A stretch of 64,000 nucleotides of DNA, from sequence record PV764938.1; one strand, 5' to 3'. Below are positions 38,943 through 41,779 of the stretch, one piece after another (positions within the stretch are counted from its first letter, which is position 1; every line of letters begins with the position of its first letter). Position numbers and translations under genes: made by a program. The notes under the pieces are model-generated. The model had not been told where the DNA came from. It saw only the letters and a list, made by a program, of their open reading frames with translations, and did no database searches.

Positions 38943-39185
38943 TCAACCAAAAGCCAGCTTAAACAGCATGGCATCCTGCCGCTTTTCGAAACAAACGTAG
39001 GTGTTGAAATTCTTGCTGTGGTAGCAACCCTTGGCGTTTTCATGGCACCAGATCAGGGCATCTTCCTCATACCGCATAAGTTCGTCCCAGGTCTTCCAAT
39101 AGTCTTGGGAAGCCATACGGATGACATGCCAACGCAGGTAGTACCCTTTGTCCAAATACTCTTCATATAGAACGTGACGGTCCAT
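38943..39185 (-). CDS. F-x4-DA-x-LFKL family protein (tandem paralogue)
   Basis: YLRW...VCFEKRQDAMLFKLAFG. Confidence 0.75.
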   Translation of the reverse strand: MDRHVLYEEYLDKGYYLRWHVIRMASQDYWKTWDELMRYEEDALIWCHENAKGCYHSKNFNTYVCFEKRQDAMLFKLAFG

Positions 39186-39499
39186 TAGGTGAAAGCCAGT
39201 TTGAACAACATTGCGTCTTGACGTTCTTCAAAGCACACGAACGCCCAATGTTTGGTAGAGAATCGGCCCTTGCAGTTCTCGCATAGCCACTCAATCATCT
39301 CGTCCTCGAACTCATAGTATTCGAGACCGTCGGCCCATATTGGCTTGGCATCGACTCGAATGGGAAGCCAACGCAGGTACAATCCCTCCGTGTAGTATCG
39401 ATAATAATCGACAAACTTGGGATCGCCGACTGTCATCATTGCGGCCTTCTCCTCCTGCTGTATCTTATATTCGAGTAGAATAGTCATTAGATGACTCAT
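39185..39499 (-). CDS. F-x4-DA-x-LFKL family protein (tandem paralogue)
   Basis: YLRW...VCFEERQDAMLFKLAFT. Confidence 0.75.
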   Translation of the reverse strand: MSHLMTILLEYKIQQEEKAAMMTVGDPKFVDYYRYYTEGLYLRWLPIRVDAKPIWADGLEYYEFEDEMIEWLCENCKGRFSTKHWAFVCFEERQDAMLFKLAFT

Positions 39500-39527: not shown

Positions 39528-39551
39528 AAAAAACCGGCCGAAGCCGGTTTT
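39528..39551 (-). terminator. tmRNA terminator
   Basis: AAAACCGGC-TTCG-GCCGGTTTTTT on minus strand (UUCG loop). Confidence 0.85.
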
Positions 39552-39723
39552 AAGTGGGCCCGTTCTGTTTCGAGGTGGAACCCATACCCAAAAGGTTACG
39601 CTGCGAGAGCGACCTTAGTGGAAACGTTGTCGTTTGCACTTAGAATTGTAGCCCGATAACGGTGGTACAATACCGGAAACCTACTCGCACCGTTCATCAC
39701 CTGGTCGATCCTATTTCAGCCCC
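39552..39723 (-). ncRNA. ssrA: two-piece (permuted) tmRNA, coding piece; tag (A)ANDNVSTKVALAA
   Basis: Starts GGGGCTGAAATAGGATCGAC; contains rhizobial-like TTGTACCACCGTTATCGGGCTA; tag ORF 39637-39596 gca aac gac aac...gca gcg taa. Confidence 0.93.
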
Positions 39724-39957
39724 ATCATAACAACATGACCCATATTGGTCGTTGGCCTCGTTGCCGTGCTACGCGCACTTAGATCCGACACATGTCGTCC
39801 GCTAACCACCAGCCCAATCCGTTCTTTATCCCGCCCTTGTCGCGAACTCAGTTGGGGAACTTGCATCTGGTAGTACGAGTGCTTGAATGCTTCCCTCTAG
39901 AATTTGATATCGAATCCTAGGCTTAACACGTTCAGCGCATGTTGTTATGATGGGGCT
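39718..39957. repeat. perfect 20-bp inverted repeat (39718-39737 / 39938-39957) enclosing 200 nt
   Basis: AGCCCCATCATAACAACATG versus CATGTTGTTATGATGGGGCT. Confidence 0.95.
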
Positions 39958-39968
39958 TCCGTTTAGGC

Positions 39969-40144
39969 CAGCACCACCAAAAACATAAGCCGCCGTCACA
40001 TGAACGACTACGCTGCAAACGAGGGTTCTTTTGTTCCTCTTGCCGTTTGCAGCGGTTTGAGGATTTGTTGTAACCCTGGGCCTATTAAGTTATGCGCACC
40101 ACTTTCCGTGCAGAAGGCCTCGTCTTATGTTTTTGGTGGAGCTG
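39969..40144. repeat. 20/21-bp inverted repeat (39969-39989 / 40124-40144) enclosing 134 nt
   Basis: CAGCACCACCAAAAACATAAG versus CTTATGTTTTTGGTGGAGCTG. Confidence 0.95.
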
Positions 40145-40200
40145 TGGGGTACCGCCCCCCAGTCCCATAGCGACTATTGAGATTGTATCAACAGCTTCAC
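40134..40200 (-). ncRNA. ssrA: two-piece tmRNA, acceptor piece (T-arm and CCA)
   Basis: GGGACTGGGGGCGGTACCCCACAGCTCCACCA resembles alphaproteobacterial acceptor piece; G3-U70 pair with coding piece; 5' end approximate. Confidence 0.9.
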
Positions 40201-40203
40201 CGC

Positions 40204-40233
40204 TATTTACACACAGGGCGGTACCCAAGTCAA
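40204..40233 (-). promoter_or_regulatory. tmRNA promoter (TTGACT-18-TAAATA)
   Basis: Late-type TAAATA at 40204-40209 and a -35-like hexamer. Confidence 0.6.
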
Positions 40234-40238
40234 CCTAA

Positions 40239-40700
40239 TTAATCCGACCCACCACAAGAACTTGAATCCGAGCTAGAAGAGCTACTGGAATCGTACGAGC
40301 TAGACGAACTGGAGCAGGAATCATCCGAAGAACTGCTATAGGATGAGGTATAGCTTGTGTAGGCGAACGGCGAAGTATCATAGTAGGAAGTGTCATCGCG
40401 ACGAGTAGAAGAACTCGTGGACGATGAACCCGAAGAGCTCGACGAACTTGTAGAACGTCTCGACGGAACACTATGATACGGGCTGTAGCTGGAGGAAATT
40501 GGGCGAGAGAAGCTCGGAGGAGTGGAGCCAACAAGATCGCCAGCAATTGTCTTTTGCTTCTTAGTCTTGAAGAACAGACCCAAGAAGATAAGGGTAGCAC
40601 CGATCGGGAATAGGATCCCGAAACCGGAGATAGAAAGTAGCACCGCGGCGACTGAAATTGCGCAGAGTGCGAAACCAATTACATGAAGGATTGAACGCAT
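40239..40700 (-). CDS. membrane protein with Ser-rich C-terminal tail
   Basis: Two hydrophobic N-terminal segments, long poly-Ser; GGAG RBS. Confidence 0.75.
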   Translation of the reverse strand: MRSILHVIGFALCAISVAAVLLSISGFGILFPIGATLIFLGLFFKTKKQKTIAGDLVGSTPPSFSRPISSSYSPYHSVPSRRSTSSSSSSGSSSTSSSTRRDDTSYYDTSPFAYTSYTSSYSSSSDDSCSSSSSSYDSSSSSSSDSSSCGGSD

Positions 40701-40761: not shown

Positions 40762-41046
40762 TTAGGGGCCGATGAAAACATCAGAGGAACCCGTTAGTAC
40801 GGAAGAACCGCAGCTTACGGGATCACCGATACGACCCGCTTGCTTATCGTTGATCCATACGGTTCCGCTACCCGAAGCAAGGTTGCCACTGTGAGAAGTG
40901 AAGCAGCTATGGGAAGCCCAAGCATCACCCTGACGGTGTGCGCCCAAATCATTTGTGAATACATCCGAAGAAGCTTCCACATTGGGACGACTGCTATAGC
41001 AGCCATGACCCGTGCATTTATCATTGAGACGAGCTGCGCCTGGCAT
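40762..41046 (-). CDS. PAAR spike-tip protein (T4 gp5.4-like)
   Basis: MPGAARLND.CTGHG; AHRQGD; AGRIGDPVSCG. Confidence 0.9.
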   Translation of the reverse strand: MPGAARLNDKCTGHGCYSSRPNVEASSDVFTNDLGAHRQGDAWASHSCFTSHSGNLASGSGTVWINDKQAGRIGDPVSCGSSVLTGSSDVFIGP

Positions 41047-41047
41047 C

Positions 41048-41779
41048 TTATGCTCCCAAAACGTTTGCGGCTGCGGATGTGAGCATTCCACCGAGGATCT
41101 GTTTCAAGCAGGGATCCTTCATCTGGAACTTCATCATTTGAGCCAAGTTCATCTTGCTCATGTTGAGCATCGACTTTGCCATCTTTTCGATTTCTTCAAG
41201 CATCTGTGTCATAGCTTTGGCGATTGCTGCCATTAGCTTTGCAACGAGTTCCTTGAGAAGATCCAAAGCGGCTTGTAGGTTCTCTTTAATGTTGGCGATG
41301 GCCGCTATAATCTCGTTCATGATATCACGACCAGCATCGAGAACCGAGCCCATGATATCACCGAAGCCCAGGCAGGGATTGCTGCCATAGGCTCCGACGT
41401 TGTTTCCGATTTCGCTCTGTACGATACTGGAAATAGTCGGAAAGTTCGCGATCAAACGATCGGTGTGTTCCTTATACTCGTCCAGTGCATCTTTAGCATC
41501 TTCAAGGTGATCCGGAATGGTCGTTGGGATATCCGGATTATTTTTCACGTCTTCGATGATTTCATCAAGATCGTTATTGGCTTGGTCTACTTCACAGGCA
41601 CGAGGGTTGGTCAGAACACCAGCAAACGGATTGGCTGTTGGCATACTGGTAACCATTTCCCTATATGTGGCCATGAGCTCTTCAGTTGGCTCTGCCGTGT
41701 TCATAATCCCAAAAAGCTCAGTCACATCTGGAGCTCTTGATGGATTATAGGTTTCACTCTGAAGTGCTGATGTCGCCAT
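41048..41779 (-). CDS. baseplate-region helical hypothetical protein
   Basis: Adjacent to PAAR; start approximate. Confidence 0.6.
   Translation of the reverse strand: MATSALQSETYNPSRAPDVTELFGIMNTAEPTEELMATYREMVTSMPTANPFAGVLTNPRACEVDQANNDLDEIIEDVKNNPDIPTTIPDHLEDAKDALDEYKEHTDRLIANFPTISSIVQSEIGNNVGAYGSNPCLGFGDIMGSVLDAGRDIMNEIIAAIANIKENLQAALDLLKELVAKLMAAIAKAMTQMLEEIEKMAKSMLNMSKMNLAQMMKFQMKDPCLKQILGGMLTSAAANVLGA

Follow-up and report, generated by a model that had tools for sequence, protein, structure and literature searches.

The 64,000-nucleotide stretch of DNA analysed here (hereafter the window) is 100% identical to part of the circular, 469,473-bp genome of Sinorhizobium phage Phosso (PV764938.1), whose host is S. 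meliloti NRRL L-50; each window coordinate equals the PV764938.1 coordinate minus 310,000. A limited search found no literature on this phage. In this work, we describe a circularly permuted transfer-messenger RNA (tmRNA) gene on the minus strand of the window, in whose long intervening segment (IVS) both strands of the acceptor stem meet a decoy copy of their partner.

The permuted tmRNA gene and its four arms

On the minus strand, Rfam recognised a permuted tmRNA that is complete, as an earlier note on this DNA had proposed from the letters alone. RF04321 matched at 40198-39596 (113.3 bits, threshold 47) and RF01849 at 40242-39553 (108 bits, threshold 50), each over the full length of its model. 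The PV764938.1 record has no RNA annotated between the hypothetical genes that flank the locus, and ARAGORN called neither a tmRNA nor a tRNA over the window, presumably because an IVS of 410 nt exceeds the length permitted by the program. Phage tmRNA genes with long composite IVSs escape both ARAGORN and deposited annotation.

The promoter (40204-40233, minus strand, as are all features of the gene) is made up of TTGACT at 40233-40228, an 18-nt spacer and TAAATA at 40209-40204; its elements AGGTTGAC and TAAATA are identical throughout five relatives. Transcription probably starts near 40198, where the Rfam permuted model begins. According to the Rfam alignment, the acceptor piece (40134-40198) comprises a strand of helix 2, the T arm and CAGCUCC-ACCA, and the tRNA-like domain includes a 60-nt block that is unchanged in five relatives. 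The order is permuted, with the 3' acceptor strand CAGCUCCACCA ending at 40134, upstream of GGGGCUG-AAAUAGGAUCGAC, which starts at 39723 on the same strand. Since CAGCUCC-ACCA ends at 40134 and G1 is 39723, the IVS is 410 nt long, in agreement with the length given in the earlier note. The real acceptor stem, GGGGCUG with CAGCUCC, places G3 opposite U70, so that the alanine identity pair is present. The mRNA-like coding piece (39530-39723) was delimited by the Rfam alignment, the tag translation and a terminator scan; its tag reading frame (39637-39596) encodes ANDNVSTKVALAA followed by a stop, and an intrinsic terminator lies at 39551-39530. All testable defining features of the alpha-type permuted tmRNA family were found except a leader:trailer stem between the real ends, the trailer of Phosso pairing not with its own leader but with a decoy.

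Two further repeats were noticed in or near the mature pieces. The coding piece contains a hairpin at 39655-39680, CCGGUAUUGUACCACCGUUAUCGG, which becomes UCGGCAUGAUACCACCGAUAUCGG in relatives (L170, L173 and L175 compared); these changes look compensatory and would be consistent with a structural constraint on the pseudoknot region. A perfect 11-nt inverted repeat (40147-40157/40216-40226) links the T arm to upstream DNA and is probably due to chance, because its upstream arm falls in the untranscribed promoter spacer and is unconserved in relatives.

The repeat search returned two inverted repeats, I1 at 39969-39992/40121-40144 (24 nt, 92%) and I2 at 39718-39737/39938-39957 (20/20), which are the only ones of at least 16 nt within 600 nt in the window, save for one 16-nt palindrome. 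In the order of the transcript, arm A (40121-40144) consists of the real 3' acceptor strand, ACCA and the trailer AAAACAUAAGACG and is, from I1 and the pairing table, the 5' strand of a helix that we call H1. It is followed by the core of a structured, non-coding module M (39993-40120, type M1), delimited by homology and covariation and including an 11-bp hairpin (40011-40021/40044-40054). Anti-A (39969-39992) is the 3' strand of H1; it reads ...CUUAUGUUUUUGGU-GGUGCUG and corresponds to a decoy 5' acceptor strand, B'. A junction of 11 nt (39958-39968) separates it from anti-B (39938-39957), a decoy 3' strand, A'', with the sequence AGCCCC-AUCA-UAACAACAUG, which is the 5' strand of the second helix, H2. 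Next comes seg2 (39738-39937), a structured core of 200 nt present only in Phosso, L172 and L179, and finally arm B (39718-39737), with the working leader CAUGUUGUUAUGAU at 39737-39724 and GGGGCU at 39723-39718.

The earlier note had placed the four arms correctly, with 20/21 complementary positions between A and anti-A over the span that it considered and 20/20 between B and anti-B. Over its whole length, H1 has 22 Watson-Crick pairs at 24 positions and a mismatch at U70. Thus, in Phosso the real trailer pairs with a decoy leader and the real leader with a decoy trailer, and the real A and B strands share only the 7-bp stem. At position 3:70 the decoy helices have U×U or G-C, and neither of them shows G3·U70.

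An independent Logan assembly of SRR33812634 yielded a contig of 340 kb in which every base of the locus is the same, which excludes a local misassembly and also argues against an abundant inverted isomer. With Rfam searched to an E value of 10, the IVSs of Phosso and of the relative L177 matched only the tmRNA flanks and a chance miRNA, and we conclude that they hold no group I intron and no known ribozyme. In particular, no Intron_gpI match was obtained at E≤10 over 39700-40160; the insert is not part of the mature RNA, and it leaves the T loop uninterrupted. No Rfam family was matched by the modules M, seg2 and X1. A terminator-like hairpin with a U-run (GUCGUUCAUGUGACGGC...UUAUGUUUUUG) was observed inside the gene at 39988-40009, directly 5' of decoy B'; in cassette-free relatives, the same element stands directly 5' of the real G1.

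Displaced ends and cassettes in related phages

We compared eleven syntenic relatives of the locus, with the gene order DUF7217, PAAR, small membrane protein and tmRNA. They were obtained through matches to the DUF7217 protein and the small membrane protein in a large protein collection, one further contig coming from a metagenome scan. Rfam found a permuted tmRNA on every relative contig that extends to the site. The tag frames are intact in 12/12 loci (ANDN...[V/M]ALAA) and the codon changes are synonymous, which indicates purifying selection on the tmRNA with or without a cassette, and hence that the decoy arrangement is compatible with function.

The IVS varies widely among these genomes: 70 nt in L183-L185, about 95 nt in L182, 156 nt in L178, 265 nt in L188, 268 nt in L175/L177, 373 nt in L176, 394 nt in L173, 409 nt in L179 and 411 nt in L172, against 410 nt in Phosso. 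Among 113 alpha-type tmRNA loci from IMG/VR, the shortest is 8 nt, the longest 499 nt and the median 80 nt; it reaches at least 100 nt in 42 loci and at least 200 nt in 10; in Hodgkinia it measures 129 nt (PMC6581868). The few tens of nucleotides that the earlier note took as normal for this type are therefore too narrow a range. The longest example, L030 (IMG/VR 3300030430_000853), is an unrelated alpha-type permuted tmRNA with an AT-rich IVS of 499 nt and without decoy arms. In fact, no internal decoy arms were found among the other IMG/VR alpha-type loci, including those with long IVSs of 247-499 nt.

A helix of some 20 bp is by itself nothing special. In the single-unit relatives L178, L182 and L183, the real 3' strand and trailer pair with the real leader and 5' strand over 22-24 positions, interrupted only by the wobble pair G3·U70 and the mismatched C74×A(-2); leader and trailer sequences vary among them with complementarity kept, that is, they covary. 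In IMG/VR, 70 of the 76 alpha-type loci with an IVS of at least 40 nt have at least eight consecutive leader:trailer pairs directly past the CCA (mode 10-13), and the leader nearly always ends in UGAU. An acceptor stem extended by a leader:trailer helix to about 20 bp is thus the normal precursor design of alpha-type tmRNAs. Because the long helix is generic, Phosso can be described as having two ordinary precursor stems, in each of which a real strand faces a decoy. In cassette-free relatives, a single helix of about 22 bp closes a module M of about 175 nt; in the Phosso lineage, the original 5' strand was left as a decoy that still pairs with the real 3' strand.

Two comparisons reveal the ancestry of anti-A. 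In a BLAST alignment in the same orientation, positions 113-282 of the Phosso locus (from the CCA to the end of anti-A) matched positions 239-408 of L177 and 370-532 of L173 with 77% identity (E ~1e-31 to 1e-34). This match, in which the M core of Phosso is homologous (77%) to the IVS of both relatives, reaches the 3' part of their IVSs and runs through their real leader and GGGGCUG. The second comparison is that of L178 and L179, whose DUF7217 sequences are identical and whose flanks are 97.4% and 96.1% identical. The L178 locus reads ...GGAAAUGUGUUUUUGAU|GGGGCUG-AAAUAGG, with no cassette, whereas that of L179 reads ...GGAAAUGUGUUUUUGGU-GGCGCUG, followed by 253 nt that end in ...CAUGUUGUUAUAAU|GGGGCUG-AAAUAGG. 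At the same site, ...AAAUGUGUUUUUGAU|GGGGCUG in L178 thus stands against ...AAAUGUGUUUUUGGU GGCGCUG and then the cassette in L179, the two loci differing by a single 253-nt indel bordered by an 18-nt direct repeat. These alignments indicate that anti-A is the ancestral leader and 5' acceptor strand, displaced and today a decoy. As a purpose-built element, the antisense splint of the earlier note finds no support here, since anti-A is homologous in position to the real leader and GGGGCUG of L178, L173 and L177, and anti-B is the decoy 3' strand of a cassette whose presence varies among close relatives.

This cassette, E_B (39717-39968 in Phosso, from the L178/L179 comparison), spans 252 nt in Phosso and 253 nt in L179. 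It consists of the 11-nt junction, A'' with its trailer, the 200-nt seg2, and the working leader with GGGGCUG. It is located directly after the original GGGGCUG, and its new leader and GGGGCUG run on into the tmRNA body. Single-base indels between the cassettes of Phosso and L179 break any reading frame and the gene calls on the Logan contig include none at this place, so E_B is considered non-coding; seg2 has compensatory pairs in the comparison of Phosso, L172 and L179. Neither the cassette nor any other module had a copy elsewhere in the window, in the relatives' flanking DNA or among the other loci compared, nor did E_B match plasmids or, by one 18-mer, IMG/VR. The IVS occurs at one place only in the 469-kb Phosso record and no other phage record matches it.

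Two kinds of mobile element were considered for E_B and rejected. A miniature inverted-repeat transposable element or an insertion sequence-type element would fit the 20-bp terminal inverted repeat, but the cassette is single-copy in all searches made. As for an integrase-borne island, borders of the island type are present, with leader and GGGGCUG at the 3' border and a decayed GGUGCUG at the 5' border, but the 252-nt insert has no tyrosine integrase and no open reading frame (ORF).

In L173, L175/L177, L176 and L188, E_B is absent and a mirror-image cassette, E_A, follows the real CCA. It begins with a short trailer and a helix, UAUACGAU/AUCGUAUA, that covaries to UAUAUGAU/AUCAUA in L173 and L188. 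The core contains a covarying hairpin (CCAAC/GUUGG versus CUAGC/GCUAG), and there is a decoy 5' strand (B''', UGGUGGRG) that is complementary to CUCCACCA and has a short hairpin after it. Last comes a decoy 3' strand (A', CCUCAUCA), which continues into the original trailer and has the real leader and B as its pairing partner. The pairing of real ends with decoys thus occurs in both types of cassette.

The distribution of the modules does not follow the phage tree. In the DUF7217 tree, all E_B cassettes belong to one clade, (Phosso, L172)+(L178, L179), in which only L178 lacks them. E_A is found in two further clades, and the IVSs of the outgroups are short and consist of a single unit. The M core is of type M1 in Phosso, L172, L173 and L175/L177, and of type M2 in L178, L179, L176 and L188. 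The M2 of L176 is 95% identical to that of L178, although their DUF7217 proteins, each 62-87% identical to that of Phosso, fall in different clades. On this evidence, the IVS is a mosaic of exchangeable structured modules. Because they have been swapped between phages whose neighbouring proteins are only ~60% identical, the modules also mark recombination, for which the repeated acceptor-like ends may have served as substrates in module gain, loss and swap. Other insertions were seen as well: a nested one of ~130 nt inside the E_A of L173 (IVS ~75-205) and a hairpin of ~110 nt in the trailer of L176 (IVS ~3-112), closed by AAAACAGU/ACUGUUUU. The IVS seems to be a hot spot where hairpin-type elements insert.

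As regards the neighbouring genes, a protein of 153 aa that starts with a membrane segment and ends in a Ser-rich tail (40239-40700), a PAAR-domain protein (40762-41046) and a DUF7217 protein (41048-41779) are encoded upstream of the tmRNA, all on the minus strand. This block is syntenic in all relatives and has a distant relative in Agrobacterium phage Atu_ph07 (35%), the only one in INPHARED, where no tmRNA was found at the syntenic site. Immediately downstream lie two adjacent genes for paralogous small proteins of 80 and 104 aa (38943-39185 and 39185-39499, minus strand), with a common C-terminal motif, CFE.RQDAMLFKLAF; their sole database relative, with 82% identity, comes from a metagenome of compost. 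In L176 (6321-7638) and L182 (5905-7222), a gene pair a few genes downstream of the tmRNA encodes a PAS/HWE histidine kinase and a response regulator, an unusual cargo for a phage.

Further relatives were searched for in several collections. IMG/VR contained none by neighbouring proteins, clade-invariant tmRNA strings or the cassette 18-mer, and a search with a trailer 16-mer gave 48 matches there, all single and due to chance. Neither clade-invariant tmRNA string was present in the GTDB genomes, the IVS was matched in Phosso alone among the INPHARED phages, and plasmids gave no match.

Conservation and predicted folding of the helices

In H2, formed by A'' with the leader and B, the comparison of Phosso, L172 and L179 shows 19 aligned pairs and no broken one. 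Three pairs have changed on one side only, and each of them is G·U on the tmRNA strand where it would be A×C on the opposite strand; the only two-sided change replaces G(-3)-C by A(-3)-U. The helix closing module M, whether built from real or decoy strands, comprises 16 pairs in eight genomes, with compensatory changes at four, and the M unit keeps a length of 174-176 nt and covarying pairs in all eight. At pair 74:-2, the C×A mismatch is confined to L178, whose strands are both real. An A to G change in the decoy leader has made this pair C-G in the three E_B genomes, and a C to U change in the decoy 3' strand has made it U-A in the four E_A genomes. The arms thus behave as RNA helices under selection, with pair-preserving changes and one compensatory pair in H2. 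We take the sequence comparison to suggest that both real:decoy helices are maintained by selection on RNA pairing, an indication that is supportive rather than conclusive because the samples are small.

The same substitutions bear on the possibility, also raised in the earlier note, that the repeats are DNA recombination sites that flip 39738-39937 and/or 39990-40123. Both segments are indeed flanked by inverted repeats of 20-24 bp. Nevertheless, the arm differences of L179 are G·U pairs in RNA but mismatches in DNA, and no flipped form of either segment occurs in any assembly: seg2 has the same orientation in the GenBank record, the Logan assembly, L172 and L179, M has the same orientation in 8/8 genomes, and the 340-kb Logan contig passes through the locus unbroken. 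Moreover, a flip would leave the junctions unchanged, and no recombinase gene adjoins the locus. The probability of invertible DNA is close to negligible.

A gene on the plus strand, either for an antisense RNA or for a CCA-ended, tRNA-like minihelix at 39952-39979, also seems highly improbable. The string on which the minihelix was based in the earlier note, GGGGCU-UCCGUUUAGGCC-AGCACC-ACCA, does exist, and a promoter-like TTAACA-N17-TATGAT stands at 39923-39951 on the plus strand, with its -10 element formed by the anti-B arm; such hexamers persist as TTAACA-N18-TATGAT in L172 and TTAACA-N18-TACAAT in L179. This promoter, however, would start transcription past GGGGCU and so leave the minihelix without its 5' strand. 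The minihelix itself is unconserved, with mismatches at G3×A70 in Phosso, at A2×C71 in L172 (GAGGCU) and at two positions in L179, and with energies of -2 to -7 kcal/mol. It is also weak across the junction on both strands (-2 to -8 kcal/mol). The promoter scan gave 2 sites for the region where 0.9 would be expected, which is no more than chance, and the promoter-like site is best regarded as a lead. A putative antisense RNA starting near 39958 on the plus strand would extend across the decoy strand and module M into the acceptor strand.

Folding predictions agree with the idea of the earlier note that the long duplexes beat the 7-bp acceptor stem. In the minimum free energy (MFE) fold of the 680-nt Phosso transcript, both real:decoy helices form, and the penalty for enforcing the stem between the real strands is 17.1 kcal/mol for Phosso, 16.9 for L172 and 16.5 for L179. 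The cost is 1-10 kcal/mol in E_A genomes and 0 in the single-unit L178 and L183, where the stem is already part of the MFE fold. RNAduplex gave -37.8 kcal/mol for A with its decoy, -39.0 for the decoy with B and -22.4 for A with B in Phosso, compared with -32.6 for A with B in L178. According to these predictions, a processing-dependent lock on the Phosso precursor is plausible, and H1 and H2 would be consistent with RNase III substrates in length (20-24 bp) and stability (about -38 kcal/mol).

One may ask whether such a lock is itself the function, that is, whether the decoy arms evolved so that the tmRNA is switched on by a timed signal during infection. The predicted penalty of 17 kcal/mol on the active fold speaks for such regulatory self-inhibition, as do the greater perfection of the decoy helices over the real:real one at 74:-2 and the fact that G3·U70 is presented by neither decoy helix of Phosso. 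On the other hand, L178 lacks the cassette and keeps the same tmRNA and tag, the cassette has been gained, lost and swapped among relatives, no sensor or alternative pairing element is evident, and no feature separates regulation from constitutive processing. We therefore regard an evolved switch as quite unlikely.

At the other extreme, E_B and E_A could be selfish or neutral passengers, tolerated in an RNA that is discarded, with arms that are a by-product of their origin and play no role in maturation. They could have arisen by tandem gene duplication with deletion of an internal body or by insertion with target duplication. Several observations would fit: presence/absence polymorphism with direct repeats at the borders, a mosaic distribution discordant with the phage tree, the nested extra insertion in L173 and the hairpin insertion in L176, and a B'-11 nt-A'' junction that resembles a gutted standard-order gene and is unconserved as a helix. 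A mere passenger would account less well for arm substitutions that all preserve pairing on the tmRNA strand, for two independent repairs of the 74:-2 mismatch, both in decoy helices, and for a cassette whose size and internal covarying hairpins have been kept since the split of Phosso and L179 (~79% genome identity). In addition, no second copy was found in phage records, the window, the compared loci, IMG/VR (one 18-mer) or plasmids. This explanation is unlikely, in our view, but has to be taken into account.

Proposed maturation of the precursor and comparison with known systems

We favour, with a probability of roughly 0.6, the interpretation that the Phosso locus is a functional alpha-type two-piece tmRNA whose IVS consists of two tandem stem-loop modules closed by real:decoy helices, and which is matured by processing. 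The primary transcript would fold co-transcriptionally into two hairpins, with stems of 20-24 bp in which both acceptor strands are sequestered. The leader:trailer parts of both stems would then be cut by an endonuclease specific for double strands, most likely the RNase III of the host, so that a junction fragment of ~50 nt (B'-11 nt-A'') bridges the two mature pieces. The shortened real:decoy duplexes would melt and the strands exchange, allowing the true acceptor stem with G3·U70 to form, and RNase P and 3' trimming would complete the ends. The module cores and the junction fragment might be by-products or separate small RNAs.

Several considerations weigh against this interpretation. The covariation of H2 rests on three cassette-bearing sequences from two lineages, and the probability that all changes preserve pairs by chance is roughly 0.01-0.05, a rough estimate rather than a formal test. 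Conversion of quasi-palindromes at the DNA level can also maintain near-perfect inverted repeats. Once RNase III had cut twice, real:decoy duplexes of ~10-12 bp each would be left, which are predicted to be stabler than the 7-bp acceptor stem, so that an extra step, such as the action of a helicase, binding of SmpB or alanyl-tRNA synthetase (AlaRS), or an exonuclease, may be needed. RNase III cleavage, the order of events and the release of extra RNAs are all steps that we infer. Taken alone, the sequence would be compatible with a regulated lock, with a constitutive pathway or with a tolerated consequence of cassette gain.

A broader and more tentative possibility is that the IVS is a landing pad for undescribed, horizontally exchanged cassettes of structured non-coding RNA (E_A/X1, M1/M2 and E_B/seg2). 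Bounded by decoy acceptor strands, these might be released as small RNAs through the end-processing signals of the tmRNA. Its maturation would then require double-strand cleavage and a four-strand exchange, either as a side effect or as a function.

If processing by cleavage and strand exchange is confirmed, the locus would provide a natural tRNA-like RNA that is transcribed with both acceptor strands mispaired to decoys and rescued by nucleases and strand exchange, and a clean system to study the way in which a designed misfold is resolved by RNA processing. The origin and growth of permuted tmRNAs are also touched by the B'-11 nt-A'' junction, which resembles a fossil standard-order gene between two permuted units.

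Long duplexes formed by the sequences that flank a released RNA are known from the RNase III stalks of rRNA operons and of phage early transcripts. The Phosso duplexes, of 20-24 bp, are predicted to be of suitable size for such cutting. Unlike those stalks, however, they contain the mature ends, and cutting would therefore have to precede strand exchange.

The two-piece, circularly permuted tmRNA of the alphaproteobacteria is said to go back to Keiler, Shapiro & Williams in 2000. The Phosso gene resembles this type (RF01849/RF04321; PMC11915505) in its gene order, T arm, G3·U70 pair, encoded ACCA and ANDN...ALAA tag. It shares with it a precursor stem that continues through the acceptor stem into the leader:trailer helix, as well as the UGAU end of the leader that sets A(-2) against C74. 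It differs in that the leader:trailer extension is real:decoy and in that the IVS has two modules (410 nt) instead of one. The recent paper on a tmRNA database (PMC11915505) describes no decoy strands or tandem IVS modules, as far as our limited literature search goes.

That paper mentions, as a unique feature, a tRNA-Ala inside the permuted tmRNA IVS of GCA-2688965 sp002688965.2 (PMC11915505). As in that genome, the IVS of Phosso houses an additional structured RNA flanked by processing signals of the tRNA type, but the passengers of the Phosso clade are bounded by decoy acceptor strands and are not a complete tRNA.

Finally, E_B recalls the islands that reside in tRNA and tmRNA genes (Islander, PMC4383910), in which the regenerated gene end lies at one border and a displaced, decaying copy at the other, and which are present or absent in close relatives. 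In contrast to those islands, E_B is only 252 nt long, has no integrase or ORF, lies at the 5' acceptor strand inside a permuted IVS, carries an inverted copy of the regenerated end and is conserved as a structured RNA. The design of the Phosso tmRNA is unusual and conserved, yet it is assembled from ordinary tmRNA parts.

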